This document shows positions 1,611 to 63,116 of a stretch of 64,000 nt of DNA, piece after piece. The notes under the pieces were generated by a model. The model searched no databases, had not been told where the DNA came from, and worked only from the letters and a program-made list of their open reading frames with translations. Made by a program: the position numbers and the translations under genes. Every line of letters begins with the position of its first letter. The first letter of the stretch is position 1. This DNA is from Syncephalis fuscata S228 (taxonomy: Eukaryota; Fungi; Zoopagomycota), in NCBI GenBank assembly GCA_025786725.1, contig JAHLTZ010000009.1, positions 434,001-498,000 on the forward strand, written 5' to 3'.

Positions 1611-3131
1611 CATAGCATTCCATAAATAAGCAGCAAATACTATGCGGCCGGACCGTAATTCAGTTGATACCAGCATTCTCTTTAGTTTCAGTAAAATAAA
1701 ACGCTAGCATTTATTCTTTTATTATATTCATTACTTTACTAACTGCATGTTCTATTCTTGTATTATTTATTTTTGTAAATGACTCATGTCAGTAAGCATT
1801 GTTTTGGCACATAATTACAACAATCAAAAGCTAATATATTTATCTATAAAAGTTTTGTACACAATCAAATTGATGATTTAAAAGTGTAATTATGACATGG
1901 ATGATAATACATATTCATCAATAATTTAAAGAAAAAAATTATATATTCCAGAAACGCCTTTCTTAGCTATCAAGGTTCACTATAGTATGTTTGGATCAAT
2001 TGCTTATACAATAGACTTGTTATGCATCACAGAAATCTTGTAAAATAAAAGATAGTTAACTGAATAGCAACTTGTATATCATATTGTTCGCAGTCACGTA
2101 GCAGCAAGATAACAATATAGGTATTAATAGAAATAAAGACCTGAAAAACGAAAAAGTTTAAAACATTGTCGTGAATCACATCAAAATTAATATTCTTGTA
2201 TATTCACGACTTAATTCTTTGTAACCAATATAAATAATTTATATAACTGTCTAATAAGATACAGTGTTTTTATTTTATTTTAGTTTTTAAAAACTATTGA
2301 AACACATTTAGATAGAATTACAGTTTGGTCAAGAAATTTAACAGTGTAAAACTATTAGTATTGCTTAAACTAAATCGCAACCATATATTTAACTAATCAG
2401 TACGTACTGTATGTTTGCTGATTGTGTATCGACTATAAGTATTACAAGAAAGACCACGCACAATAAATCACATAATCAACTTTTAAGGCATAAAAGTGCA
2501 TTGATAGAAAAAAATTAAATGTAGTACAATATTCATAATATGGTTATTTTTGGCAAAATATTGATTTTATTTAATTTAAATTATTCAAATAAAGCAATGG
2601 GACTACAGTTATTTTAATCACATTGATTATAGATACATGGGCGTTTAATCACAAAAATTGTTTATTGTTAATCAAAAATCTATGCAAACCATTCCAGCTG
2701 TCAACTTGAAATGACCAAAGTGGAATAATACATAACATACCCGAGCTGCATGAGCTGGCCAGAATGTTGTTGCTGCGTAGTTATTGAATATAGAAAGCTT
2801 ATAATAATTTAATAATTTCTTTTTTTCATATATCATTAATCGACATAAGTGTTTTGTTTTTGTAACAGTATTATCTTCAAGTTCAGTGATTCACCAATTA
2901 TTATTCAACTTGTGTTTATTGCCAGCTTAGATGATGCAAAATCTGCAGCTGACGTCGTGTACATGCTTGACTAAATACCCGTGTACCCACGGCAATTGCC
3001 ATGCATGAGGCACAAAAACCGGTAGTGACCCTTGTTTAATATCACATTGCAAAACACTCAGATTTATGCTTCTACACGTCTATTATTTTATCATTTACAC
3101 ACTACTGTTTTCGCAATATACAAAACCAAAA

Positions 3132-4101
3132 ATGCCGTTTATTAATTATACCGATCCAACGCAAACTGAATGGAGGCATAATTCTACAAAGCAATGGGGT
3201 ATTCCTCTCCATCCATTTGGTGAAATAAGCGTGCCTGATTTTTTAATGGATGCTTCAGGTCATATCGACGAGCAGCGTCTTCGTTTAATAGGCGTGCAAC
3301 TTCAAATGATATTTTCTGTTACAATGCTTTGTATTTTTGTACACAATATTGTTATAACTACCAAAATGACCATATCGCGACCGCGTAGTATGTTTTCATG
3401 GTGCTGTTTACGCTTGCTGTTATTGGTACTTTGTATAACATAATGCATATAGTCATGTTGATGGGCTATGGCCTTAATTGTAGAATGCTGGTATGGTCAG
3501 CCGGGTTTTTTACTTCACTAGGAATGATCTTTAATAGCTTAATTCTTCTTTTGAAAGTCCACTTGGTTCTCTATCAAAAAAAGTGGATTATCTATGTTGG
3601 CATTCTCCTTATATTGCCGCAAATAGGTTATACTTTTATTTTGATATACTACTCTTTCTTTACTTTGAAAGCGAAACTCGGCTGCGCATCTACTATCCAC
3701 CTATTTTTCTTTGGTACTGGATTGGCGTAAATACACCCATCAATATTTTTTTCAGCCATCTTCTGCCGTATTGCTTTAAGCAGTATCGTTTGTTTGGATC
3801 TGATGCGTGGAGGCGACTAGCACGGGATGGGATACAGACATATGTCTGGCATTATTAACCAATATTATTTGTTGCACCCTTATAATTAGTCGTTTCGACG
3901 ATGCTAATAGCGATATGCTTTTTCCCATCGACTGGTAAGCATTGATAATTATTGCATGTATATATCTAATATATTTATAGGATGATTGTTGCAACCATAT
4001 TGATTAGACATTGTGAGAAGATGGGAAATAACAATCAATCTGCGTATCGTCCCAAGACTTATAATATACTGCATCTATCTCAAATTGTCACTGCAAGATA
4101 A
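3132..4101 (+). CDS. GPCR-like multi-TM family, type A copy 1 (MPFINYTDP...), apparent frameshifts
   Basis: ORF pieces 3066-3443, 3398-3730, 3583-3858. Family motifs WGIPLHP, NCR, WYW, KQYRLFGSDAWRRLARDGIQT. Intron 3935-3980, last exon ends SQIVTAR*. Confidence 0.75.
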
Positions 4102-4947
4102 ATAGCTAATGCGTTAATATTCATCTATCTAACTTATTATAAATGCAGATTGTATATAGGCAATAAATATTAAAGTAATTTTAAATTCTTTTATAAAAAC
4201 TACAATTGTTATTTAAAATTGCATTTAAGAGTATGTCACTAATTAACACTAGATAAATGGACAATGTATATAACTAGTAGTACAAATATTTACATAGAAA
4301 TGGTAGGTTTGATAAGCAAGCACTGTTTTATTTTTATTAAACTGGTGGTTGTTGATTTATATTCTAGAGTATGCTACTGTGCTTTCTATTATTTAACAAG
4401 TTTAACTGTTATGTCTTTGTGCAAATCGATCTATGGAGAAAGACGAAGGTATCAATTTTACATAATACCTATTCAATGTACCATTTTATCAATAACTTAT
4501 TGTTTACTAGTGATATAGTATATAGAAACACCTTTGGTGTAGAATAGCCTTTATTGTATCCATACTGATGAACATGTTCTATAATATACCAACTTGTTGG
4601 ATAAATAGCTGTTCTTACACTTTGTTTAGTACTTTGTGTTTTTATTGACAGCTACTCAACAGTAGAATAGATAGCTAACAATATGTTATTATTATATATA
4701 ACTGTACTGACAAATAATAAACCTTTTTTCTTTGCTTAAATGATCTGTTTTTACTTAGCTGCATCTCTATAGTCGATCTGGTATAATGATTTAAAGATAA
4801 CATATTGCTTTGTTGTTTTATCTATATTGCTATAGTTTAATTTAAATAGCCAATTTTAAAAGAATAATGATTGATAAAGCTATATGCAAAATTATGTAAT
4901 TTATTTTAAATTAACAGATTTATTTGTAATACAATCACGGTCGTGTA

Positions 4948-7023
4948 TTAATCAACCACTACTAATTTCTCGTACTTCTTTATATCGATTGCGGCACGCA
5001 ATGTATTCCATGGTGACATATTTTCAATACGGTTTTCAAGGAATAGTTTAAGCATTTGACCGCTGAATCCAGATAACATACCAACGCCTTTTTGATTTAC
5101 GGTTACCGGCTTAGAGCCGCCATCTGCATCACGCCCCGAACCGCGTAGATTCCAGAATATCATCTCTGGCACTTCGTAACCAGCTTCTGTAAACTTGCGA
5201 ACAATAACTGCATAATCAGTATTGAACGCACTTAAACCACCTGTACAAGCTTGGTTAAATTCCATATCAGAGAAAACAAACAAACGTTTGACCATGTGTT
5301 CCGGCTCAAGATTCGATGCTTTAGCTTGTTGAAGAATAAGATCGAATACTGCTTGGAAATTAGTGCTAAATCCAAATCCCATAGTCGATACGTTCTTTAC
5401 TCGATCAACTAGTGTTTCACCAACAACATGGTGTATTTCTGGTTGTTCGCTGAACGTGATTAGCAGCTGGTTGAACGGTGGCTTAGTAAGCTCAGTGAGA
5501 AGTAGCGATAAGGCAATGGCGGCATTCATCGGAGTGCCGTTCATCGAACCAGATACGTCGCACACGGACATGGTCGCGTCAAATCCACCGACTTTGGCCA
5601 ACTTGTCAACGTAAGAACGCCATTGCGTTTCCAATACATCTATAGACTGATTGTCATCGGCCATCCACCGATGATTTCATTCATATAATGTTTATATGCT
5701 TCCTCTACAAGTTCATGCGGCATTAAAGCTCCGCTGGCAATCTTCTTTTCTCCTGTCTTCACTTGTCCCAAATAAGTACGAATCGTTCTTTGTCATGCTT
5801 AGTAAACTGGCCTTTTGCTTCTTCATGCACACCGATGGAACTCGCTCATAATTAATACTCGACCAATTATTTTGTGACATTAAAGTCTCAACTACAGGAA
5901 TTTTAGCACGTAGTGGCGTGAGATAGTCGCGTTGATACTGAATACGTATACGCATGACATAAGCAGTAAGTTCTTCGCCTTGCTTTCGGTGTTCAGCCTC
6001 TGGATAGAGCATTTGAGCAATAGTTGTTGCTAATAGCGTATAACTATCGTGGTGGGCACGTGGTGTGGGCGCCCATTTTGCAGCCAATGAGGTAGATTTG
6101 TTTTTCTTCAATAGCTCTAAATCATTGTATAATGCTGCGGCAAAATGTCGAGCTGTTTCCACATGAAGTTTTTGATAAGAAACGTCATTTTCAAATAAAT
6201 TTCGTACACGATCACGTTTTTCCTTTGTTCGTTCATTACGTTCTTTACGTGCAGTCTTGCTAAGATTAAGCATTTCTGCTTGATTATGTTCTGCGCGTTC
6301 TTTGCGATAACGTGCAATATTTTCTTCACTTGTGTCGGACGCCGCTTTACGGAATTCTTCTCGGCGATTCTTGCGAACCAAATTTCTAGTAGTCCATACT
6401 TCTTTAGTGTAGCGTCGACCACGAGCAGCCTCACGCTTTCTATACTCTTCCTCCAGTTTATTGACACCTTCTACATCGATTGTCTCCCAAAGAAGAAACT
6501 CTGCCAAATCTTTCCAGTAGCCCACTGCTGGAAGCGTAGGTAAATTGGCAAAAAACGTTTCAGGATGAAACTGCCGTAACCACTGTAGTGCATAATAAAA
6601 CTCTTTACGATCGCCCTTGCCATCACGTATATCACGTAGCTGGAATATTAGCTTAAGTGTATCGAGCGGATCTTCTTTCCAGGCCTTTTCCAAGCCAGTG
6701 CGAATATATTCACGACTAGTACCAGACATGGCATCAAAGAAGAAGTCAACTCGGGCAGAAGTTGTAGTGGCATAAGTTACACTGCTATTTTCGGTAAGTT
6801 TTAAGTTGCCTGTAGATGCAGCCAGCATAGCATCAACAAATGGGGAACTGGTGCTGGCAGTCTTGTCCGAGTCGGCAGTATCATTATTTTTTGGTTGATT
6901 CGGCTCGGCCGATATAAATTCAAATCCTTCTTCTACTTTGCCGACGCTCTTGGCTACATCCGCTGCTTGAGGCAATGGATTGGCAAAAGAAAGAGTATAA
7001 TCGCCAGAGATATAGTCAGCCAT
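4948..7023 (-). CDS. DUF2828-family protein with C-terminal vWA-like domain, apparently intronless, frameshifted near 5670-5800
   Basis: Motifs LTEN, DPLDTLKLIFQLRDIRDGKGDR, GYWKDL, SLAAKWAP, INYERVPS, VCDVSGSM, STNFQAVFDLIL, FVFSDMEF, IFWNLR, SGFS are typical of DUF2828 proteins. Confidence 0.85.
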
Positions 7024-7621
7024 GGATAAGTCTCAGTTTCAATAGACAATAAACCAAATGACAAGCAAGAATAAAAGCAGGTAAAGAAGAGGTGGCGGTA
7101 CAGTTCAATGGCCCTTCCTGTTAGCGCTCTTTTATGACGATCTTGTGACTCAGTGTTATATTGTGCGTCATCATTCATTGAATACTATTTACGGCAATCC
7201 TTTGGAAAACTGGTCACAACACTTGGGCACAACACGTTTTACATTTTTATCGTAATAATATTGATATGCATGAGTAGATTAATCATGTAATAAAGTAATG
7301 TAGTTATTGTAGTGATGTTAAGCATATCAGCCATCTAGATCGACCAGATTTTAGTATTATATTGGCATAATTTAAAATAAAAGTCTGATGGTTACAACTT
7401 GAAAGGCATACGATATTACATTTTAGACTACGTAGATAGCATACGTTTAATAAAGCACTGGTCTTTCCGCTAGTTGTATTTTATTGGATTTAATCAAAAC
7501 ATATTAAATGGCTAATAAACTATTTGTATAAATAATTGTAGTATGTTAATACTTTTAAAAGAAAAAGTCATTTTCAGCTAATAAAATAGTTATAATAGCG
7601 ACATTTATTTAACATAATGAC

Positions 7622-8649: not shown

Positions 8650-9735
8650 GATGTATGAATAGTATAGATATTAAGAATACAATATACAATAATAAATCTG
8701 TTAGTATGTGTCGATAAAAACTGGTTAAATAATTGAAAGAGTGAATACAACTAAGAAGCACGTCTCGCTGCTATCAAGTTTTGGCTATAAGATGAACGGA
8801 CCAATGGCTTATGGTCATAACCTGTTATGCATCTCGAAATCGTGGCATATGCCATGATAATACCGAAGTAAATAGCTGTATGTATATACCATCTGTTCAC
8901 GCGCAGCATGACAGCAAAATAATCAACCACATGGTAATAAAAGCAAAGGCCTCAACTGATCACTGGATTTATACTAGATTGTACTGGCATCTCTAATCAT
9001 TGAGATTAATCAAATAAAACAATTAATTTTGATTAAACTAAAATTCAATTATGTATTTAAATAGCTATTGTGTGCTGTATGATTGCTGGTTGTATATTTA
9101 CTATAAAGACTACAAAAGGCTGCACACCTAATAGTATAATTCTTATTTTGTAATGTTCATTTTGTGTGATCCATCCGAAGCAAATAAAGAAATATATTGC
9201 AATAACAATACATGGCGTTTTTTGTAGTATTTCTAGTCACATTAGCACGAGACATATATGAGTGTTTAAGTATAGAAGTTGCCTATCGTTGATCAAGAAC
9301 TCAGGCGAGTATTCCAGTTGTCAGCCTAAAGTGGCTAAAATAGAATAACGCACGATATGTCTTGAACTGCATAGTCTAACCGGATATCCGCTGCTGCGTT
9401 GCTGTTGAATATAAAATATGCAAGAACTTGATGAATTCTTTTTACACATATTATATGTCAGCATCAATATTGTAGTGTTACTGCGGCACACGATCATCTT
9501 CAAGTTCAGTGATTTGCCAACCAGCTTTTTATTCAGCTTGTGACCATTGCATGCTCTGGATGATGTATGGTGCAGCAGCTGACACTGAGCATTCGCAAAA
9601 ATTATCATGCATGCAATACAGAAAACTGGTAATTGCCCTTGTTTAAATACTTCATTGCAAACTGTTTAAATTTATGCGCTTTACCTCTATTATCTAGCCA
9701 TTTATACACTATTACCGTTATTTTTATAGGTTAAA

Positions 9736-10710
9736 ATGCCATTTATTAACTATACAGACCCAAAGCAAACTGAGTGGATACATAATGCTACAAAGCAGTG
9801 GAGCATACCGCTCAATCCACTTGGTGAAATGAGTGTGCCTGATTTTTTGATGGAAGCTTCAGGTCATATTGATGAACAACACCTTCGTTTAGCGGCCATA
9901 CAAGTTCAGCTTGTATTTTCCGTTATAATGCTTTATATCTTTGCACACAATAGCATTATAGCTACCAAAATGATTATATCAAGGCCACATAGCAAGTTTT
10001 CATGGTGCTGTTTAACACTTGCTGCTGCTGGTGCCATATCCAGTATAATGCACATATTTATGTTGACGAGCCATGTCATTAACTGTAGAATGCTGGTATG
10101 GTCGTCTGGATTTTTTATTTCATTAGGAATGATCTTCAATAGCGCGATTCTTCTTTTAAAGTTCATTTGGTTCTTTATCAAAAAAAGTGGATCACTTATA
10201 TTGGCATTCTTTTTATACTGCCGCAAGTAGGCTATGGTTTTATTTTAATATACTACTCTTTTTTACTTTGGAGATCAAACTCGGCTGCGCAATCTACTAT
10301 CCATCCATTCTGCTTTGGTACTGGATTGGCGTAAATACACCCATCAATATATTCTTTTCAGCCATCTTCTGCCGTATTGCTTTTAAGCAGTATCGCCTAT
10401 TTGGATCTGATGCATGGAAACGACTAGCACGAGATGGAATACAAACGATATGCCTGGCCTTATTAACCAATTTTGTTTGCTGCATAGCCATAGCTAGTCA
10501 TTACGGTGATACTAACCTTGATATACTTTTTCTTGCCGATTGGTAAGTACTGGTGCTTAATTGTATGTATATAGCTAATATATTTATAGGATGGTTGTTG
10601 GAACCATATTGATTAGACATTGTGAGAAGATGGGAAATAGAAATCACACTGGATATAGTCCTAAAACTAATCATATGGTCCACATGTCACAAATTGTTAC
10701 TGCAAGATAA
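9736..10710 (+). CDS. GPCR-like multi-TM family, type A copy 2
   Basis: ORFs 9736-10230 and 10187-10546 with the same motifs. Intron after ADW, last exon ends SQIVTAR*. Confidence 0.75.
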
Positions 10711-11658
10711 ATAGGCTAATGCATCAATATCTTGCATCTAACTTATTATAAATGCGGATTGTATATAGGCAATACAATATTAAAGTAATTTAAATTCTTT
10801 TATAAAAACATTACAATTGTTATTTACAAATTGCATTTAAGAGTATGTCACTAATTAACACTAAATAAATCGACAATGATATATAACTAGTAGTACAAAT
10901 AATTTGGATAGAAATGGTAGGTTTGATAAGCAAAGCACTTGTTTTATTTTTATTAAACTGGTGGTTTGTTGGTTTATATTCTAGAGTATGCTACTGTGCT
11001 TTCTATTATTTAACAAGTTTAACTGTTATGTCTTTACGCAAATCGATCTATGGACGAAAGACGAAGGTATCAATTTTACATAATACCTATTCAATGTACC
11101 ATTTTATTAATAAATTATTTTTTTATTGGTAATGTGTTATAAGAATTAAACTTTCATACTCATTTAAGCAATATTACAAATCAATAAAATCATAAATTTT
11201 AATGATTTAGCAATAATCTGTGATAAGGGCAGAATTGTTGTATAATTCATGTTTATCAATTATCCAATATTACAACTTATCAACTATTAATGTCAATACA
11301 AAAAGATACTATAAAAACATTGTAAGATTATATAGCTAGCCCATAAATCTACTTAATTGATACACAATACAATTGTATACTAATGCCACTCAATAAGTAT
11401 TTAATCTATTCAATAAATAAATAATTTGGTTTAGTATTATAACTACAGATATACAATATTAACGTCTTTATTAAAGTGTTAGCTAGCAATATAATACTAA
11501 TATTCACAAAAAACAAAAAATGAGTTTATAACCTATTACACCAGGTAAAGAGTTATAAAAGACTGGATCATAAAACAAAGTTACAAGCCACATTGGAAAA
11601 AATTAAAATATATGCACAGTAAACGACGCGTGTGTGTGAGAGAGAGAGCAAGTAATGG

Positions 11659-15886: not shown

Positions 15887-17977
15887 AGTTAGAAAATCGA
15901 CGACGGAACAAGCGAGTAAGTGTTTACTAGAACATAAGCATCAACATCAGTTACTTGTTACATGTTATAATATAAAATGTAAAATTATTTACCTGTAGTG
16001 TATTAATTACAACACAGATATGAAACGCTTGAATAATTCAATAAATGAACACAAACGTAGACACACGGCTGTTTTGTTTTGTAATTGTAATTGTTGTAGC
16101 TGTTGAAACAATAGCTATGGTTGCTATAACTGCTACTGGTACTGTTATCGCTATTGCTATTTTGCTCGATTATTAAAGAAAAAACCAAGAATGCTAACAA
16201 CTATTAAGCAATATGTAAGCACACTCAGTTGTATATCCCCCGGGAGACTGTCTGAAAAGTTGAGCCAAGCACTTATGACGACAAATAGCAATAAAAGGTT
16301 GTAGTCGAGAGCAGCACTTAAGCGCAGTAATAAACAAGTCAATAATAAAGACAATAAACGACGGTGTCACTGATAAAAGCGCGCGCCGCGCTATGTATAC
16401 ACACCAAGGCAGTCTTACGTGTAGATATGCCCGTCCAAACGTGGCGGGTTGACGACCGCCGATAGCAGTTGTAATAATAGTACAATGCTAGTTGATTACA
16501 ACCGCAAACGGCTCGGCGTTGGAGATTAGGCGTGGCACGTAGCAGTTGGTCCGAGTAACAGAATAAAAAACAGTGATAGGCGTGCTAAACCGCAATAGAA
16601 TAAAAGTCGCTATGAATATAAGTTATAGTGAACGAGGACGTAGAAAGACTGGAAGTAGAAGAAAGAGCAAGCAGTGCCTGTCGTAGGTGTATACCGGGAT
16701 CGTCGAAGTGGTTGAGATGAGTAAATCGAATGCAAAGAATGGGAAAAAGCGTAGGACCAACCAAGGAAAGTCCGACAAGTAAGGCAGTATTCTCGGTGAT
16801 AGAATATGACTGAGATTAAGTAGTTGATAATAGTGGAAATAGTAATAGAACTATTAATAAAAAGTCGATGGCAAAGTTTTTAAGTAATGGCCTATAATGA
16901 ATTAATGGTGGCAAAGATAAAGTTTACGCAGGGGAAAGTAAAATAGTGCGGTTGTTGTTGTTACTACTCGTAGTATATAGATACACACACACACACATTT
17001 AATCCTTCCATTCACTTTCTGTACGAGATACAAGTAGGTGAGTGTATGAATGGATGAATGGATGGAAGGGCGTACAGAGAAGCGGGGTAAAGAAAGGATA
17101 TCGATAGTTTGTCTACCATCGCTTGGGAATATCTCTGTCACGTTTCACGAGTGTTACGTAGGCCTAGATGGAGAGATGGAGAGATGAAGAAAGTGTGCGT
17201 GTAATGCATGCGTCTCTATCTACATCGTGGTAAGTACCATTGGTAATAGATAGAGATGCCAAGCTACTATCCATGTACACGTGCACACACCGCATGCATG
17301 TGATGGGTTGATGGGTTGACCATACCTATGTACACTACCGCCATCATTGATACTTACTGTATATAGTGTAACATATACCAAAGGTTCAAGGAAATAAGTC
17401 ACAATAGCCTATGCTGTGATGGTTATTTATGGTTTACCAAGTTAATAGGCTATATTAATCGTGTAATATGTTATGGGTTATTTAACATTGTTAGATGATT
17501 TGTTAGTCTTTAGTGCAATTTGGTGTTAAATGGCTACAATTAATAACACTCAATTTATTGAACATGATGACGGGTGGTGAGTGACATTAATTATCAAATA
17601 CTCATCATTATAGATTCATTATCCAGTATGTATATATTATTCCCATTCTATTCCATACTATCATATATCGTTGTATGTTATAGTGGAGGCATTTTATTTG
17701 CCATAGTTTTTAATATACTTTACTCATTCCACTCATTGAGTTATACGCACTATAACTTCACTGCCATTATTCATGCCGTTTCTTTTGTCTATTCATTTTG
17801 CTATATATCGCTCTGTCATCTTCTTAGTCTTTTATAATACCGCAGACTTAAATAGTCTACAAATTATGCACATAAAACTAGAGGCATCATTATCATACTC
17901 TACTTTCTGCCACCTACTTTATACTAATAACTTTCTATTGTTTATTTTACCTTCTCCCTTAACAAATCAATACCATC

Positions 17978-18569
17978 ATGAAGCTTTTTATTGCCGTCAT
18001 TTGCATCATTGGAACAACTTTTGTAGTCAGTACATCCATAGTGAATATTAAGCCCAATCGAGCCCGCGTAGTATATTGCGATTACAATAAACATTTAAAT
18101 TAGTATATTTACTAGCATTATATTTAATGAATAATGAAGTTATGGCTATGGATTGTTGTTCCAGCACTTAATGTATATTGTCATGCATACACGACTAGTT
18201 GGTAAATCTAATAAATTTATTGATGCATTAATTTCTGATTACGTGTTAAGGTGTAGTGCGTAAACCAGCGCCATTGACTAAAGTAGTTACATAAATAGTA
18301 AATCAAACACTTTATTAAGTAGATTAATATACTATATTTACATTGATAGGACATAAATAATATTGTATGTTAACCGAAAACTTAATTGTTACTTTTATTT
18401 AACATCAATAGTTGGTAAGTGGCATTCTATATTAACAAATTATTGAATAACATATATTATGCATCGTGTGTCTAATAATTCAACATCAATAGCCGGTAAG
18501 TAATATTTTATTGTGTTAATTTATACATTAATCATATGGTATGTAATATATAAATCTATAGGCAGCTAA
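17978..18569 (+). pseudogene. Degenerate paralogue of the micro-exon secreted peptide gene
   Basis: Leader MKLFIAVICIIGTTFVVSTSIVNIKPNRAR. Candidate 3-nt exons TTG 18199-18201, TGC 18257-18259, GAC 18350-18352 (donor reads ATAAAT), TTG 18412-18414, CCG 18493-18495. Terminal exon GCAGCTAA at 18562. Confidence 0.65.
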
Positions 18570-18843
18570 TAGCCAATATCTTCAAGACATTAGCATTGGT
18601 AATGTAGTTGGAATGTTAGTCCAATACACTTTAGGTATATATCCGGTAACAATCAAGACCATTTGACAATTACATCGTTCAATCTACTCACCTATCAATT
18701 TCTAACCAATGCTCCGATCTATTATACATTTAATTAATAACGCCATTATACTATTAATAAGACTGCACTTAGCTGTATCTATTTAGCTATGCAAACTTCT
18801 AATAATAAATATATGGTTTTATTCTAATTAGATTTCATCAAAC
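18398..18843 (+). repeat. About 445-bp near-identical direct duplicate of about 29642-30080 (last two micro-exons, terminal exon and 3' flank)
   Basis: Direct comparison from TTTAACATCAATAGTTGGTAAGTGGCATT to TTTCATCAAAC in both places. Confidence 0.9.
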
Positions 18844-26742: not shown

Positions 26743-28612
26743 AGCGGAGTATACGATTGTATTTGAATGTTTTCGTTAAGCCACTGGCGTAAAATTTGCG
26801 TCGTGCAATTGGAATTTATGTGTGGTGGGATGACTCGATGAATATGTTGGATGGTACTAATACTAAATATTGTGCTTAAGCAACCACTATTTATATTTGG
26901 ATGCATCATTCGCTAGCCTTAACCTGTTTATAATTGTTACAATAAGCCGGTCATTGGGACATCAAACTGCCAACAAGGCATTATATTTTCCACACGATGT
27001 AACACGGTACAAAACTAAACCGGTTATTTTATTTAGACTGCGGTATAATAGCTTGAAGCGTGTTGTTTCGGTAAAATAAACACGCCTTATTCAACATAAA
27101 ATCCACTTGACTATTAAAACACCAAGCCTGTTTTTTATTAGACTATTCGAAAACTAAAACAAAGATATTGATAACGATATTGTAATACAAATGCTCAAAT
27201 GGTGTATTATAGTCATATTTTTTAAATAGAGATATTATTACAAAATATATTAAACTTATAATCAGTAAATTATATTTCAATTTAGCTGTATAATAATATT
27301 GCTTTATAACACGCTCAAATAGTTTGTGGTACCTGTTGTGCATAACTGCAATAAAGCTGAAACAACATTCGCTTAGAAATATCTAACATTGTTTTTGTTT
27401 TCTCCTTTCCCCTTCCTTTCAACAGTCTCACAACTATGCAGAATAAATTGTTATATTGCTAATCTCATAACTGTGTAATATCACATGCCACTTTTACGTT
27501 GTCTACGTACATTATTAGCGCTTTTATGCAGTATGGTAAATAGCAGCAACCGTTAAATAACAACAGTTTGTACCATCAAAGCAACAGTGTTAAACGTGAT
27601 TTAACCAACATATTCAAGTACAGACTTTATTTGTCGCAAAACTCAACTAAATAATGTAAACACAAAAGCAAACAAATGCTAAAAGTGCTTATTAAATAGT
27701 ATAACCAATTGCCATATGATACTGAAACGCATTATGTAACATGTTGAAATACCGCCGCAATATCATGTAGTTTTCAGTCAGCTGTATATCTTTTTATAAA
27801 CCCATATATCAAACAGTACAAAATGTATTGTGTCAATACAGCTGTTAACTAAAGTATATACACTAGCAATGGTGATGAAATCAGAGAGTGGCTGGAATAC
27901 TTTATTAAATATATACTCGACATTCAATGGCTAATATGGCAATTTGTTTTTACAATGGCGTATATATAAAAATCTAACGATATTTTTTAAAATAAATTGT
28001 TCATTTGTTGCCAATAGATATAGTGCTGGATTAAACGGAAGCTTGAACTAATCAGTATATTGTTATGTTTAGAAAACTATAACTAATTTACACGCACAAT
28101 GATAGATACCTGTAAAAATACAAGCTCAATGTATTGATGCTATCAATGAAAACGATCGTCAAAGGCACAGTGATGTGCCACTACTGTTTCCGTAGAACCA
28201 ATAGATTTAATTTGCATGCATGGTCGAATTGTGTGTAACGGTATTTTACCCACTAATAGGTGTATTTCTATTATATATGTATGTACTAGATGCTTATATT
28301 GCCAAACAGATTATAGCGAAGGATTGGTTGTACAATACAACACCATCAACATATTAGTATACGTATGCATCAAGCCACCATGTGGACGTGCTGTTATTGG
28401 TTCGCATTGCACATCAATGGTACATGCCATACAGTGCATTATTTTATTCCTCAGAATAAGCATAGATTTAAATAGCTCACTAGAAATATACAACTAACCA
28501 GCAATACCATTATCACACTCTACTTTCTGCCAAATACTCACTACCATCTACTTTATACTAACCGCACTTTGTTTTCCAGCCTTCTTGCTTGTCTTAACAA
28601 TTCAATATCAAC

Positions 28613-29813
28613 ATGAAGTTTTCTATTGCCATCGTTTGCACTTTCATCGTAGCCTTTATGGCCAGTACAGCCATGGTGGATGCTATGCCAACTCTAGTTC
28701 GTCGTGGTATGTTACGGTTAAATAATTGTTTTTTAACTAAGCACTGCTTTTACTTGCCAAAATAATGTTAATAGAACGTAAGTTGCATTGTATATTAATC
28801 AATTATATACTAATCAAATACCATGTGCTGTGTGTTTAATGGTTTGGCATCAATAGCTGGTAAGTTACATCGTATATTAATTAGCTACAAATTAACATAT
28901 ACTATGCGCTGTGTATTTAATGATTTAACAGCAATAGATGGTAAGTTACATCGTATAGCAATTAACTATGCATTGACATGTGCCATGCACTGTGTTTAAT
29001 GGTTTGACATCAATAGTTAGTAAGTGACATTATAGGCTAGTTATTTATACGCTAACACATGTTATGTATTTTGTACTTAATAATCTGGCATCAATAGCTG
29101 GTAAGTTACATTGTATAGCAATTACTACGCACTAACATATGATATTCACTGCATGCTTAATGATTGGCATCAATAGCTGGTAAGTACATCGTATATCAAT
29201 CAGCTACGCACTAACCTATACCATGTACTGTTGTTCAATAATTTGACATTGATAGATGGTAAGTTACATTGTATATTAATTACTACGCATTAACATATCC
29301 TATGCAATGTGTATCTAATAATTTGACATAATAGCCGGTAAGCTACACTGTACAGCAATTAACTAATGTTAACATATGATATGCAATGCTTGTTTAATAA
29401 TTGGACATCAATAGAAGGTAGGTGACATGTATATTAATTAGCCATGTATTAACATATATTATGTAATGTGCGTTTAATGGTTTGACATTAATAGTTAGTA
29501 AGTGACATTGTATATCAATTACTACGCACTAACATATGATATGTACTGTCTGTTTAATGACTTGACATTAATAGGTCGTAAGTGATATTGTATCTCAACT
29601 AACTATGAATTAACTTATGCAATACAATGTGTATTTAATGATTTAACATCAATAGTTGGTAAGTGGCATTATATATTAACAAATTATTGAATAACATATA
29701 TTATGCATTGTGTGTCTAATAATTCAACATCAATAGCGGGTAAGTAATATTTTATCGCGTTAATTTATACATTAATCATATGGTATGTAATGTATGTATT
29801 TATAGGCAGCTAA
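28613..29813 (+). CDS. Secreted prepro-peptide encoded by exon 1, thirteen 3-nt micro-exons and a terminal exon: MKFSIAIVCTFIVAFMASTAMVDAMPTLVRREPDVTADAEVSLAGS*
   Basis: Exon 1 28613-28706, donor GTATGT. Micro-exons, each preceded by ATAG and followed by GTAAG or GTAGG: AAC 28775, CTG 28857, ATG 28938, TTA 29017, CTG 29098, CTG 29177, ATG 29256, CCG 29335, AAG 29415, TTA 29495, GTC 29575, TTG 29656, CGG 29737. Terminal exon 29806-29813 (GCAGCTAA). Confidence 0.8.
28771..29805 (+). repeat. Diverged tandem repeat of about 80 bp, about 13 units, each one intron plus one 3-nt exon
   Basis: Approximate consensus GTAAGTtacattgtatattaattaactacgcaCTAACatatgatatgcactgtgtgtTTAATgatttgacatcaaTAG-NNN, period 79-82 nt. 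Confidence 0.95.
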
Positions 29814-30399
29814 CACCAATATCTTCAAGACATTAGCATTGGCAATGTAGTTGGAATGTTAGTCCAATACACTTAGGTATATATCCGGTAACAATCAAGA
29901 CCATTTGACAATTACATCGTTATCTACTCACCTATCAATTTCTAACCAATGCTCCGATCTATTCTACATTTAATTAATAACGCCATTATACTATTAATAA
30001 GCCTGCACTTAGTTGTATCTATTTAGCCATGCAAACTTTAATAATAAATACATGGTTTTATTCTAATTAGTTTCATCAAACTCTTGCCACTATGTTTGTG
30101 TTTTATTTCCATCCCATGAGCATCGAACAATAACCAAATGTATTATCAATATATTTTTATGAGTATGCTGCATTAGCAAATAATATAGACTGACACAACA
30201 ATGATAACAACATTATTTAAATAGAATCATAAATAAAACTATCCACATATATCATAACTTCAACACAGTTATCCATACACTACTTATTGTATATTCAGTT
30301 TACTACATGTAATTTTATAATCACAAGTTACTATTAACAAGTAAATTTACTAGTATACCTTTACATTTTTCAAAGTCGCAATGTAAAATATTTATTGTA

Positions 30400-37720: not shown

Positions 37721-38144
37721 AATAGCCAACAATAAAGCTTAGCAAATAATGTTTGTGTAATGTGCGTATATATCGCCGTTTAAGCTGCCGTAATTGAAAG
37801 TTGCCACGTATCCAACAAAGAAAAAGGGCGAATAAAATTGCAGGGAAGAGACAAGATCAATGGAACAGACAAAGCTTGGGAACTGATGTTTTATTGCTAA
37901 GACAGGCTATCGGCTCCGGGCTTTAGGCAACGGCAACAGTCGCAACAGAGTGACGGGCAGTGGGACGTGCTACTATTGCGTATCTGTGTCGACTGTGTCG
38001 ACTGACGTGAATGGCACGTGTGTCGCTCAAATCGGCACATCCCCAACGAAATTACACCCGAACACTATTATCACATGTAAACGTTTGAATGTTATCATTA
38101 ATTCGGTAAATGGTGTAATATAGATATGTATTTTATTGTTATTA

Positions 38145-38547
38145 TTTTTATTTTTATTTTGAAGAGCTTGTGAGCCCCCGCTGCGCATAATTAAAGAATT
38201 TGCGCTGCTTCCCACTATATTTGGACTTTTCCAAACTTTTAACGGGTGGACTGCCACGTTTTTGCGCAAAATCTGGTCCATATAGATTTTACACGGGGGC
38301 CATCTTCCTTTAAATGGTGCTACACAGCACTATTCTCTTGAAGTTGGTCCCAATTGGGTTTTCCTCGGCTATTCTGGCCAAGGTCTTGTTTCCGGACCTA
38401 CTTATTGGGTTCTGGTTTGCAATTTGTTAACTAGAGAAAACTGGAGGGGGGGGTTTTCCACTTAAGGATTGATTCAAACTGAGGTTTGAACCCGGAGCCT
38501 TCAGCTCGGGAGACGCTGCCTTACCAACTGGGCTAGCAACGTCCCCC
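38145..38547 (-). mobile_element. tRNA-derived SINE-like element (about 403 bp) with 17-bp target-site duplication and A-rich tail
   Basis: Minus strand starts GGGGGACGTTGC-TAGCCCAGTTGG (A box)...GGTTCAAACC (B box) and ends CAAAATAAAAATAAAAA. Flanked by identical GTATTTTATTGTTATTA at 38128-38144 and 38548-38564. Confidence 0.85.
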
Positions 38548-45300: not shown

Positions 45301-45997
45301 TATATTTATTACCAAGTTTTAGCATTGCTTTATATTAATACTGTAGAATAGAAATTAGAATATGCACAATAGTATAGTACTTGTTTACAACAGTATTTAT
45401 TTAATTTAATTCTGATAATCTACCTAAGCAACTGTACTGCAATAGCAATACGTAATTCTGTCTGTAGGTTTTCAAGACAAGTCAATTCCAGACATACATG
45501 GTGTCAACATAAAAATCACCTATCACTGACCAAGAGCTCAGGCGAGCTATGCTAGTTACCCACCTAAAATTACTAAAAACGGCACAATGCATGACATGGC
45601 ATGAGCTGCATAATCTGAACGGATATTCGCTGCTGTACTGTTGTTGAATAAAAGATTTTACAAGAACTTAATGAGTTTATTTTTTATCTATTATTCGTCA
45701 GCATTAATGTCATAATGTTGCTGTGGCACAGTATTATCCCAAGTTTAATATTTTACTTATTATTTGGTTCAACTTGTAATTGTTGTTAGCTTGGATGTTG
45801 TGTAGTGCAGCAGTTGATGTTGCGTACATAATTGACTGAATATTCATGTACCGCATCAGTTAATATGCATGAGGAACAAAAACTGGTAATGCCCTTTGCT
45901 CCAAATATTTTATTGTGATACACTCAAATTTATGCTATTGTACTTTTATTATTTTATCATTTACGCACTACTATTTTCACAATATACAAAACCAAAA

Positions 45998-46973
45998 ATG
46001 CCGTTTATTAATTATACCGACCCAAAGCAAACCGAATGGAAACATGGTGCTACAAAGCAATGGGGCATACTGCTCAATCCACTTGGCGAAATGAGTGTAT
46101 CTGATTTTTTGATGGAGGCTTCAGGTCATATCTACGAGCAGCGTCTTCGTTTATCGGGCGTGCAACTTCAAATTGTAGTTTCTATTATAACATTTTGTAT
46201 TTTTACACACAATATTCTTGTAACTACCAAAATGACCATATTACGCTCAAATAGCATGTTTTCATGGTGCTGTTTACTACTCGCTATTAATGGCAGTACA
46301 TATAGTATAATGTTTACATCCATGCTAATGGGCTATGGCCTTAATTGTAGAATGCTGGTATGGTCAGCCGGGTTTTTTACTTCATTAGGAATGTTTTTCA
46401 ATAGCCTAACTCTTCTTTAAAAGTCCGTTTGGTTCTCTATCAAAAAAAGTGGATCACTTATGTTGGCATTCTTTTTATATTACCACACCTAGGCTATGCT
46501 TTTATCATGATATACAACTCTTTTTTTACTTTAGAGCCTCTACTCGGCTGCGCCATCTACTATCCACCTATTTTTCTTTGGTACTGGATTGGTGTAAATA
46601 CACCTATCAATGTGTTCTTTTCAACCATATTCTGCCGTATTGCTTTAAAGCAGTATCGTTTGTTTGGATCTGATGCGTGGAGGCGACTAGCACGGGATGG
46701 GATACAGACAGTATGTCTGGCATTATTAACCAATATTATTTGTTGCACCCTTATAATTAGTCGTTTCGACGATGCTAATAGCGATATGCTTTTTTCCATC
46801 GACTGGTAAGCATTGATAATTAATTGCATGTATATATCTAATATATTTTTAGGATGATTGTTGCAACCATATTGATTAGACATTGTGAGAAGATGGGAAA
46901 TAACAATCAATCTGCGTATCGTCCCAAGACTTATAATATACTGCATCTATCTCAAATTGTCACTGCAACCTAA
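45998..46973 (+). CDS. GPCR-like multi-TM family, type A copy 3
   Basis: ORFs 45896-46420 and 46429-46809 with one indel near 46417. Intron after SIDW, last exon ends SQIVTAT*. Confidence 0.75.
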
Positions 46974-47735
46974 ATAAGCTAATGCGTCAATATGTTACAT
47001 CTATCTAACTTATTATAAATGCGGATTGTATATAGGCAATACAATATTAAAGTAACTTCAAATTCTTTTATAAAAACATTACAATTGTTATTTACAAATT
47101 GCATTTAAGAGTATGTCACTAATTAACACTAGATAAATCGACAATGGTATATAACTAGCGGTACAAATAATTTGGATAGAAATGGTAGGTTTGATAAGCG
47201 AAGCACTTGTTTTATTTTTATTAAACTGGTGGTTTGTTGGTTTATATTCTAGACTATGCTACTGTGATTTCTATTATTTAACAAGTTTAACTGTTATGTC
47301 TTTGCGCAAATCGATCTATGGATGAAAGACAAGGTATCAATTTTACATAATACCTATTCAATGTACCATTTTATCAATAAGCTTATTGTTTACTAGTGAT
47401 ATAGTATATAGAAACACCTTTAGTGTAGAATAGCCTTTATTGTATCCATACTGATGAACATGTTCTATAATATACCAACTTGTTGGATAAATAGCTGTTC
47501 TTACACTTTGTTTAGTACTTTGTGTTTTTATTGACAGCTACTCAACAGTAGAATAGATAGCTAACAATATGCTATTATTATATATAACTGATACTGACAA
47601 ATAATAAACCTTTTCTCTTTGCTTCAAATGATCTGTTTTTACTTAGCTGCATCTCTATAGTCGATCTGGTATAATGATTTAAAGATAACGTATTGCTTTG
47701 TTGTTTATATCTATATTGCTATATTTTAATTTAAA
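46650..47735 (+). repeat. About 1.1-kb near-identical duplicate of about 3780-4850, part also at about 10720-11110
   Basis: Direct comparison of the 3' coding part and the long 3' non-coding flank. Confidence 0.85.
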
Positions 47736-60392: not shown

Positions 60393-61688
60393 TTGCGTTT
60401 TGTATATTGTGTAAATAGTAGTGTGTAAATGATAAAATAATAGATGTGTAGAAGCATAAGTCTGAGTGTTTTGCAATGTGATATTAAACAAGGGTCACTA
60501 CCGTTTTTGTGCCTCATGCATGGCAATTGCCGTGGGTACACGGGTATTTAGTCAAGCATGTACACGACGTCAGCTGCAGATTTTGCATCATCTAAGCTGG
60601 CAATAACACAAGTTGAATAATAGTAGTAATATATAGGCTGTTAAGTTTGAAGATAATGCTATGCCACAGCAACACAGCAACGTCAATATGACAAAGGATT
60701 TATAAAATATTAAATGCTTGTAGGATTTACATCTAGCAGAAATACAACAGCAGCATGTATAACCATGGCATGCATTGTGCCGTTTTTAGTAATTTTAGGT
60801 GGGTAACTGGCATAGCTTACCTGAGTGCTTGGTCAGTGATAGGTGATTTTTATGCTTAGATACCATGTATGTCTGAATTGACTTGTCTTAAAAACCTAAA
60901 GACAGAATCACGTATTGCTATGCAGTACAGTTGCTTAGGTAGATTATCAGAATTAAATTAAATAATACTGTTGTAAACAAGTACTATACTATTGTGCGTA
61001 TTCTAATTTTATTCTACAGTTTAATATAAAGCAAAAATAAAGCTCAATGCCTGCTATGCTAAAGACGTTGTCTATTGACTAGAATGTGTGCTAATTGTAC
61101 TATTTCCAACAGCATCAGTTACTCAATACGATTGTCATAATTGATATGCTTTGTTAGCCTTTCATACTAGTCACACTGGCTTTTTATCTTAAAAACTGGC
61201 CATTCACTTTAGTGGAATGACCTTTTTGTGGTATTTATAGCCATCCGATAACCAACATCCATATAGCACAGAATGACTAATTAACTGCGTAGCTATATTA
61301 TGATTTAATCAAAAACTAATGGTTTTACATGGTCAGTTTTAGTAGCCACAAATGCCATTGCGATTAGTATAATTCAGTGATCCATTGAGGCCTTTACTTT
61401 TAGTGGTGCGCAGCTAGCTATTCTTCTGCCATATGGCTCGTGAACGGATATCATATACATACAGCTATTCACTTCAGTATTATCGTGGCACATGCAACAA
61501 TTTCAAGATGCATGACAGATTTATGACAATAGATAATTGGTCCGTTCATATTATAGCCAGCACTTGATGGCTACAAGGCGTACTTCCTAGTTGTATCCAC
61601 ACTCTTTCAACTATTTGACCAAAGTTTTTATTAACACACACTAACACATTTATTATTGTATATTGTATTATTGCTATATATATATATA

Positions 61689-62655
61689 ATGCCAGTCATT
61701 AATTATAACAGCCATGAATATACTGAATGGATTAACAGCGACATAAAACAATGGGGAATCCGCCTTCATCCACTTGGTGAAATGCGTATATATGATTTTT
61801 TTATGGAAGCTTCTGGCGACATTGATAAACAGCGCCTTCGACTACTTAGTGTACAAGTCCAAATTGCAATGTTGTTATAGCGTCTTTTATATCTGGCGCA
61901 ATCTTGTTGTTGCCAGCAAAATGGTCATATCACGACCTCATAGCATGATATCCTGGTGCTGTTTTATTCCTTCTGTTTTAATATTATAGCTAGTTTGATG
62001 AACATATTTATATTCATAAATTTTTTGGTAATTGCCGAATTATTATATGGATTATTCTATTCAGTATGTCATTTACAATGATTGGCAACAGTTTGATACT
62101 GCTTCAAAAGACCTATCTGGTGCTTTGTCGACAAAATGGATACTTTATATTAGTATTCCATTTATAATGGCACAGCTCGCCTTTGTCCCATTACAATTTG
62201 TTATAGTTTTTTACTTTAGAAGAAAAAGTTGGTTGTATGGATTACTCCCTCAGGCTTTCTATGGTATTGGTTTCTAGTTAATGTGCCAATCAATGTGCTA
62301 TTCTCTGTTATCTTTTGCCACATTGCTTTAAAGCAGTATCGTTTATTTGGATCAGATGCATGGAAGAAATTGGCACGCGATGGAATACAAGTAATGGCTT
62401 TGGCCACGTTATGCAATACTCTTGTTCAATAACTCCTATTATGCCTATAAGCAAAGCCTATTCTGACGAATTTTTCATCATAGATTGGTAAGTAATGATA
62501 AATAGTTGTTTATATAAAACTAACATAAAAATAGGATGTTTGTTACAACAATACTAATCAATCATTGCAAAAATGCATCCAGAAATATTGGCTTTGCACA
62601 CCAACCAAAAACCGATTACATACTTAATTTATCTCAAATTGCTACTACAAAATAA
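61689..62655 (+). CDS. GPCR-like multi-TM family, type B copy 2 (many indels, possibly a pseudogene)
   Basis: MPVINYNSHEYTEW...WKKLARDGIQ...IIDW, intron, last exon ends SQIATTK*. Upstream region is homologous to 8650-9060. Confidence 0.65.
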
Positions 62656-63116
62656 TTTGTTAATAAATATGCGTATTAGCATTCGTGTTATAAGCAAACC
62701 TTTAAATTAGCAACTTAATTATGTGTAAAGCTTTATAAATAGAATATACTTGTTTTTATTTGTTGTAATTATGTGTTGAAATAGTGCTTGCTAGCATAGA
62801 TTATTTATCACGGAAACAGGTGTAATAATAAACATGTGATTAATAAAATAATGAATACAACAAAAGCATATATATTATTTAGCATCGAATTTCAGTACAC
62901 TATAGAGCATATCACCAGTAAATTAATAATTTTATTAATAAAACGACACTTTAATCAAATTACTATTTAAAATTGCTATATTTATTTTCTTTATAAATTA
63001 GCTGATGTAAATAGGTGATGGGCAAACTTTTTAAATAAATGAAAAACAATATCAATATATTCTAAAAATAAGCTATATGTCTTAATATATTATTTATTAT
63101 AATTATTGTTGATAGA

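Follow-up and report, generated by a model that had tools for sequence, protein, structure and literature searches.

Among the genes known to be built of very short exons, the micro-exon genes (MEGs) of flatworms (Schistosoma and others) are close in layout to the locus described here. MEGs likewise begin with an exon for a signal peptide, most of the mature secreted protein lying in short symmetric exons of a length divisible by three, and they form hypervariable families, found in parasites, on which automatic annotation fails (PMC10526429). The exons of Schistosoma MEGs are 6-81 nt long (mostly 15 nt), number 10-20 per gene and are separated by unrelated introns of 100-5000 nt (PMC10526429). 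In the fungus Syncephalis fuscata, by contrast, the exons measure 3 nt and a gene can have as many as about 30 of them, and conservation is higher in the introns, which are short tandem repeats, than in the exons. Sequence homology to MEGs, for which alternative splicing is documented, is lacking. The spliceosome can include an exon of 3 nt, as seen in long reads of Coprinopsis cinerea, where single exons of 1-3 nt occur, 27 of them of 3 nt in 26 genes (PMC12230235); in S. fuscata, however, an entire peptide is encoded by 13 to about 30 such exons in succession. Introner-like elements are described as many near-identical short introns per genome that carry their own splice signals (PMC4457414, PMC4974935). 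The S. fuscata units share with them the near-identity of short introns within one genome and the splice signals in each unit, but introners are dispersed in unrelated genes with normal exons, whereas the S. fuscata copies lie head-to-tail, with strict 3-nt spacing, in one family. Since the exon lengths of that family are always multiples of three, duplication of a unit is a better fit than insertion into a coding sequence that was already there. Fungal KEPs and alpha-factor-type precursors resemble the family in having a conserved signal/pro leader, a dibasic site and a hypervariable mature peptide, but those are encoded on ordinary exons, and Kex2 processing of the present peptides would follow from the Arg-Arg motif only; conotoxin superfamilies, with the same layout of leader plus variable mature part, are alike by analogy only. 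Our literature search, incomplete in coverage and leaving priority uncertain, returned no description of tandem arrays of 3-nt exons.

S. fuscata (Zoopagomycota, Zoopagales, Piptocephalidaceae) is a haustorial parasite of other fungi and is not known as a pathogen of humans, animals or crop plants. The window, i.e. the whole stretch of DNA that was analysed, is 64,000 nt long (assembly GCA_025786725.1, contig JAHLTZ010000009.1, positions 434001-498000). The product of a neighbouring DUF2828/DUF7788 gene shows 100% identity to an S. fuscata protein, and the rest of the window carries ordinary eukaryotic genes (homeodomain/HOY1-like, ABC transporter, amino-acid permease, Pop5, RPAP2). The locus occupies positions 28613-29813 of the forward strand and is referred to below as the array gene. 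We put at roughly 70% the probability that it is a real, unannotated protein-coding gene and a member of a family of small secreted prepropeptides.

The array gene (all features on the + strand) is preceded by a promoter and 5'UTR block at 28467-28612 that is alignable with the sequence upstream of nine further loci of the family. Within this block a TATA-like TTTAAATAG is located at 28467-28475, and positions 28508-28532 are 96% identical to 17888-17912 of a paralogue. Exon 1 (28613-28706) starts with the ATG at 28613 and consists of a 31-codon hydrophobic leader plus one G, 94 nt in all, which sets phase 1; to judge from its hydrophobic core, its product is a predicted signal peptide with a short pro-region, and Arg-Arg is found at residues 30-31. 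The exon 1 donor, GTATGT at 28707, is kept in all array-bearing members and opens an intron of 68 nt (28707-28774) that resembles the repeated introns in its 3' part only. The array proper (28775-29739) contains 13 exons of exactly 3 nt each, starting at 28775, 28857, 28938, 29017, 29098, 29177, 29256, 29335, 29415, 29495, 29575, 29656 and 29737, with 12 related introns of 76-79 nt between them. Each of the 13 lies between (A/G)ATAG and GTAAGT (the latter being GTAAGC in one case and GTAGGT in another). The last intron (29740-29805, 66 nt) is like the repeated introns in its 5' part, unique in its 3' part and 95% identical to the last intron of the paralogue, and the introns of the gene overall measure 66-79 nt. 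The coding start of the terminal exon (29806-29813) supplies a GC that closes a Gly codon, the Ser codon AGC and the TAA stop at 29811-29813. The stop adjoins, on the upstream side, a family-conserved 3'UTR (29814-30081; BLAST and alignment to L127, L128, L130-L134 and the paralogue) and falls at the same site as the stops of the intronless members. Tandem Repeats Finder gave a period of 81 for the array, with 12.1 copies and 73% matches, and in the window 25 instances of the motif AG-NNN-GTAAG were counted where 6 were expected, 12 of them in the array and two near 18.4 kb. As in MEGs, a first exon with a predicted signal peptide is followed by symmetric internal exons (13/13 of 3 nt, phase 1-1) and by a terminal exon holding the stop and the 3'UTR. 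No public protein model for the array gene was matched by its unspliced 50-aa ORF (28613-28762) or in the search with exon 1.

When the exon 1 product (31 aa) was used as a phmmer query against 1.84 billion representatives, eight proteins were found, all of them from S. fuscata and all encoded on other contigs, and no flatworm MEG was among the matches. On these sequence grounds the S. fuscata architecture is analogous to that of MEGs and independently evolved. The eight proteins are 65-77% identical to exon 1 over residues 1-31 and wholly different beyond, and Arg-Arg at residues 30-31 is invariant in the array gene and all eight database members. The order of predicted N-terminal signal peptide, dibasic site and putative mature peptide is that of a Kex2-processed prepropeptide. 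The family has at least ten loci, and in a ten-locus alignment the TATA-like box, 5'UTR, leader and 3'UTR are common to all and the middle is hypervariable. Four members are intronless (P0031, P0032, P0034 and P0037) and six are of the array type, i.e. the array gene, its degenerate neighbour at 17978-18569, and L127-L130. In the array members the donor is situated directly after Arg-Arg plus one G. The arrays of L127-L130 have a period of 81-83 nt and 14 to more than 27 exons of 3 nt each, and these sister genes also carry a few exons of 6, 9, 15 and 33 nt, lengths that are always multiples of three. The public models at the sister loci are cut off early or extend into introns, so the annotation pipeline produced no usable model for them. 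A Pfam search of the family gave no match, and in the corresponding region of S. plumigaleata (L002) neither synteny nor an array was found. Among the intronless members, P0032 (L134:3001-3336), P0034 and P0037 are Cys-rich or have several internal Lys-Arg sites with repeated amphipathic segments, again with no match in Pfam; P0032 has internal Lys-Arg sites, and the L127 product has one. The products of these members are candidates for toxins or signals that the mycoparasite makes as processed peptides.

Repeated DNA was also seen at and around the family loci. Introns of L127, L129 and L130 contain a dispersed repeat of some 325 nt (identity 80-88%), always shortly past the donor (L127:7245-7570; L130:4744-5067; L129 at about 4188-4258, 5505-5758 and 7095-7395), and one further copy lies outside the arrays at 38139-38465 of the window. 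A repeat of about 1.7 kb has four copies in the window (3128-4818, 9732-11112, 45994-47706 and 61685-62658), contains an annotated 164-aa single-exon ORF without Pfam match, and may be a mobile element. An annotated ORF of equal length, alike by length alone, is located at L130:1739-2233, 1.8 kb upstream of the L130 family member.

The reading phase of the micro-exons needed independent evidence, because over the 13 triplets of the array phase 0 is open as well as phase 1, phase 2 having three stops. In the intronless members Arg-Arg lies inside the protein, which fixes the end of exon 1 at 28706 and its donor at 28707. Measured against the long ORFs of the window, codon usage over the micro-exons scores +6.7 bits in phase 1 and -3.2 bits in phase 0, and the phase-1 codon usage equals that of exon 1 per codon. 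Reaching phase 0 through an upstream donor (GTTCGT at 28697) was rejected on the Arg-Arg of the intronless relatives, codon usage and the stop position. The L127 chain, read in phase 1, is open for 21 codons and stops at the terminal exon, where the L130 chain stops likewise. Codon usage in the sister arrays is poor in every phase. Counting the fewest stops over three phases against base shuffles proved an insensitive test, and the depletion of stop triplets and the comparison of adjacent with skip junctions were used instead; the constancy of the 3-nt length against intron indels, available for one array only, was set aside as too weak.

The coding nature of the sister arrays is established by a pair of Cys-rich peptides, one encoded by the array of L128 (L128:6001-8416) and the other by the continuous exon of P0031 (L133:3001-3256). 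L128 consists of the leader, exons of 9, 33, 3, 3 and 6 nt, and then a series of 3-nt exons, including one with a GC donor (GC-AG intron); the exon coordinates of the L127 and L128 chains were taken from direct reading of the sequence. When the L128 exons are joined in genomic order in phase 1, the resulting peptide is collinear with the mature part of P0031, and in the 13-residue CKC...CTSC core 10 residues are identical with no gap. The local score of the pair is 76, compared with 25.7 +/- 5.4 (maximum 60) for 10000 residue shuffles. At the nucleotide level 33 of the 39 core positions are identical, though those of L128 are spread over about 1.1 kb, and phases 0 and 2 of L128 and shuffled exon orders yielded no match to P0031. 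The 3-nt segments of the family are therefore true exons, joined in their genomic order without omission. Two histories are conceivable: the introns of P0031 were lost by way of a fully spliced mRNA that was reverse-transcribed, or every codon of L128 acquired an intron behind it. Lengths strictly in multiples of three speak for growth by duplication of units, with the introns lost at a later time. The predicted peptide of the array gene is short, of low complexity and free of Cys, and it has no counterpart among the intronless genes found.

It is unlikely, in our estimate, that the array gene is a non-functional relic, i.e. a pseudogene, or a leader gene in which the array is an intronic satellite removed whole, with exon 1 joined to the terminal exon. 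The family decays readily, as seen in the degenerate paralogue, the ~325-nt insertions into arrays elsewhere, the mutated last acceptor of L128 and the poor codon usage of the sister arrays, and the array gene could accordingly be a young pseudogene; it is also absent from public protein models, and an open frame over 13 codons is not improbable by chance. The decay is plain in the paralogue, located 10.6 kb upstream on the same strand (17978-18569), where a leader about 85% identical has suffered a 1-nt deletion, the donor is weakened to GTATAT, and decayed units precede intact micro-exons at 18412-18414 and 18493-18495 and the start of the terminal exon at 18562-18569. Its 3' part (18397-18843) is 95% identical to 29641-30081. 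From these features the paralogue is probably a pseudogene, and its 3' half looks recently converted. In the array gene, on the other hand, no damage is seen in any of the 14 donors and 14 acceptors, in the start codon, in the leader or in the stop, the phase-1 codon usage of the micro-exons is as fitting as that of exon 1, and the sister arrays are demonstrably coding. Removal of the array as a whole would leave a leader plus two residues, with no mature part.

A functional gene might still use its micro-exons in a different way, and the sequence-only reading of this locus had proposed that alternative splicing of a stop-proof array could yield a library of short acidic secreted peptides. In full, this would be a cassette system in which regulated or stochastic skipping of micro-exons produces the library from one gene. 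The arithmetic of the proposal holds. All introns are in phase 1 (exon 1 of 94 nt, 13 exons of 3 nt) and every product ends in Gly-Ser, Arg-Ser or Ser-Ser before the stop; by the coordinates the micro-exons end in G (nine), A (two) or C (two), never T; and when all 8192 inclusion patterns were enumerated none caused a frameshift or a premature stop. The patterns are, as had been expected, more numerous than the peptides, 4268 of which are distinct, with lengths of 2-15 residues, and skipping recodes neighbouring residues, e.g. omission of the exon at 29017 changes DVTA to DAA. Schistosome micro-exon genes do diversify their secreted proteins by skipping symmetric exons (PMC10526429), and very short exons are hard to define, which makes some skipping plausible. 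Preservation of the frame upon skipping is, however, a trivial result of the 3-nt exon length, and the reading of the T-free ends as design did not stand, since in the sister arrays 20 of 92 micro-exons (22%) end in T. A caveat had already been attached to it, that the lack of T partly reflects the usual preference for G before a donor. T precedes 19% of the GTAAGT motifs elsewhere in the window, and with T at 19-22% the probability of finding none in 13-14 ends is about 0.04-0.05. For stop-proofing it is enough that T is missing from the ends before the last exon starting with AA, AG or GA, which are the first eight micro-exon ends, and for these P is about 0.14; under family composition the absence of T has a P of about 0.04-0.14 and is no more than chance. 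The excess of G at exon ends corresponds to codon position 1 of a peptide rich in Asp, Glu, Ala, Val and Gly.

The junctions of the sister arrays bear more directly on the cassette proposal. None of 78 adjacent junctions forms a stop, where shuffling of the exon order gives 3.3 expected (P=0.014), but 12 of 263 skip junctions do so, which is the chance rate (4 of 64 for single skips), and exon pairs that would form a stop are present in every sister array. Selection has thus kept open only the fully included frame, and it is to the fully included product of L128 that the intronless P0031 corresponds. The splice sites of all 13 exons of the array gene are uniformly strong and near consensus, unlike those of regulated cassette exons. 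Fungal splicing works by intron definition, and of its alternative forms exon skipping is the rarest, which also counts against a cassette system. We regard cassette splicing of this kind as quite unlikely, and stop-proof combinatorial splicing as the main mode is probably wrong. What survives of the proposal is the gene model, with its phase-1 introns, 3-nt exons and immediate stop, and the short acidic secreted peptide, favoured by the conserved leader with its dibasic site; the stop-proof generator as a design finds no support in the sister arrays. From the evidence in the sequences, splicing is most likely constitutive, takes the introns in sequence and has a single acidic secreted peptide of 15 residues as its product, and minor skipped isoforms may exist beside full inclusion.

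The introns of the array gene are more alike than its exons. Pairwise identity averages 0.75 over the intron columns and is 0.23, 0.56 and 0.45 in the three exon columns; in the sister arrays the introns are at 0.82-0.88 and the exons at 0.33-0.37. In every variable array examined the exon columns were the least conserved (0.21-0.51, compared with 0.64-0.93 for introns), the reverse of the usual pattern. The conserved intron blocks are the donor, a branch-like (C/T)TAAC motif and the 3' end. An intron conserved above its exons is the signature of snoRNA host genes, but no conserved base pairs were present in the intron consensus structure, folding was weaker than that of shuffles (z +0.2 to +1.3), an Rfam search of the introns returned no family at E<=1, and no C/D or H/ACA boxes were seen in them, so that the introns contain neither a conserved structured RNA nor the known boxes of a small-RNA host. 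That the tandem introns themselves are the product, releasing snoRNA-, mirtron- or siRNA-like RNAs in the manner of SNORD115/116 with the exons as spacers, would agree with introns far better conserved than exons in every array, but it is very unlikely given unstructured introns without an Rfam match and exons under coding constraints. Origin by unit duplication alone does not account for introns 75-90% alike beside saturated exons; constraint from splicing, concerted evolution limited by selection, and positive selection on the triplets are candidate causes.

We propose that the array gene is expressed by constitutive, sequential splicing, as follows. The introns of about 77 nt, unstructured and provided with consensus signals, would be recognised singly by intron definition and removed in sequence, probably from 5' to 3' along with transcription, so that every splice makes the upstream exon longer by the time the next donor comes into use. 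All micro-exons would be present in the main product, and removal of the signal peptide and Kex2-type cleavage would release the acidic peptide of 15 residues. The array itself has probably grown as tandem copies were made of a unit consisting of one intron plus 3 nt. As about 96% of such a unit is intron, unequal recombination would almost always remain in frame, with a residue added, removed or recoded, and diversity would therefore be mainly genomic, between paralogues and strains, rather than the outcome of splicing. Of the two ideas, that of diversification in the DNA has the better support.

Arrays of similar design were sought in JGI metagenomes by scanning for three consecutive ATAG-NNN-GTAAG units, which gave at least 120 stretches. 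At least 41 arrays with variable triplets, in at least 31 loci, were recognised in environmental and partly fungal contigs. Among the matches listed they reach 30-40 units, and their introns are 64-93% alike and unrelated to those of S. fuscata. Stop triplets in the environmental variable arrays number 7 against 27.6 expected (P=3e-6), variable intron positions of the same arrays giving 6-14% stop triplets, both again among the matches listed. Phase 0 is open in 31 of 33 environmental arrays of at least 8 units among the matches listed, so most of these arrays read one exon as one codon. Two of the arrays (L077 and L056) lie downstream of a signal-peptide exon with a Kex2-like site at its end, and a PTH11-type fungal domain adjoins the L077-type gene; a search with the L077 leader found no match beyond its own unspliced ORF. 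The leaders of L077 and L123-L126 are 98-100% identical and end in Leu-Glu-Lys-Arg, yet are followed by different series of 3-nt exons, and all five contigs break inside the array, i.e. assemblies fragment at these loci. In four other contigs an ankyrin-repeat ORF is continued by a variable array, three of them with a NACHT-type domain (L052, L090 and L109, of the fungal NLR type) and one with ankyrin repeats only (L011). The arrays take up the ORF in phase 0 at a GTAAGT donor, most clearly in L052 and L090, and add charged tails.

The same pattern, searched in 596 Gb of bacterial and archaeal genomes, gave no variable array and only invariant-triplet CRISPR arrays, mostly from Nostocales, which points to an architecture that is eukaryotic and recurrent. 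A CRISPR repeat of heterocystous cyanobacteria contains ATAGGGAGTAAG, which matches the splice-like pattern, and the metagenome arrays with an invariant 'GGA' were excluded as cyanobacterial CRISPR arrays. These false positives (L006, L018, L019, L039, L059, L119 and L135-L214) are recognisable by the invariant triplet. The array gene is not of this kind, as its variable part is 3 nt and its conserved part about 77 nt, the reverse of a CRISPR array. As a tentative extension, single-codon exon arrays could be a widespread fungal diversification device, zoopagalean and environmental, that also serves the C-termini of NACHT-ankyrin proteins. Recombination, slippage or conversion between units would reshuffle, add or delete single codons with the frame unbroken, a reverse-transcribed, fully spliced mRNA would occasionally fix a successful peptide as an intronless gene, and regulated exon skipping may be an additional layer.

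If confirmed at the RNA level, the array gene and its sisters would contain the longest run of 3-nt exons that we have found reported, a whole peptide being encoded with one codon per exon. They would bear on the mechanics of splicing, i.e. how the spliceosome handles a donor located 3 nt from the previous acceptor, and in which order the introns are removed. For annotation, the array gene is without a public model and the models at the sister loci are faulty, and fungal secretomes and effector catalogues may for this reason systematically lack such genes. For the evolution of introns and peptides, conserved introns beside saturated exons, together with homologous paralogues that have no introns, provide a natural experiment in which loss of introns can be weighed against gain. 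For mycoparasitism, the family would represent a lineage-specific set of peptides with a common leader and a variable mature part, possibly with a mycoparasitic or competitive role, in a haustorial parasite that lives on other fungi.
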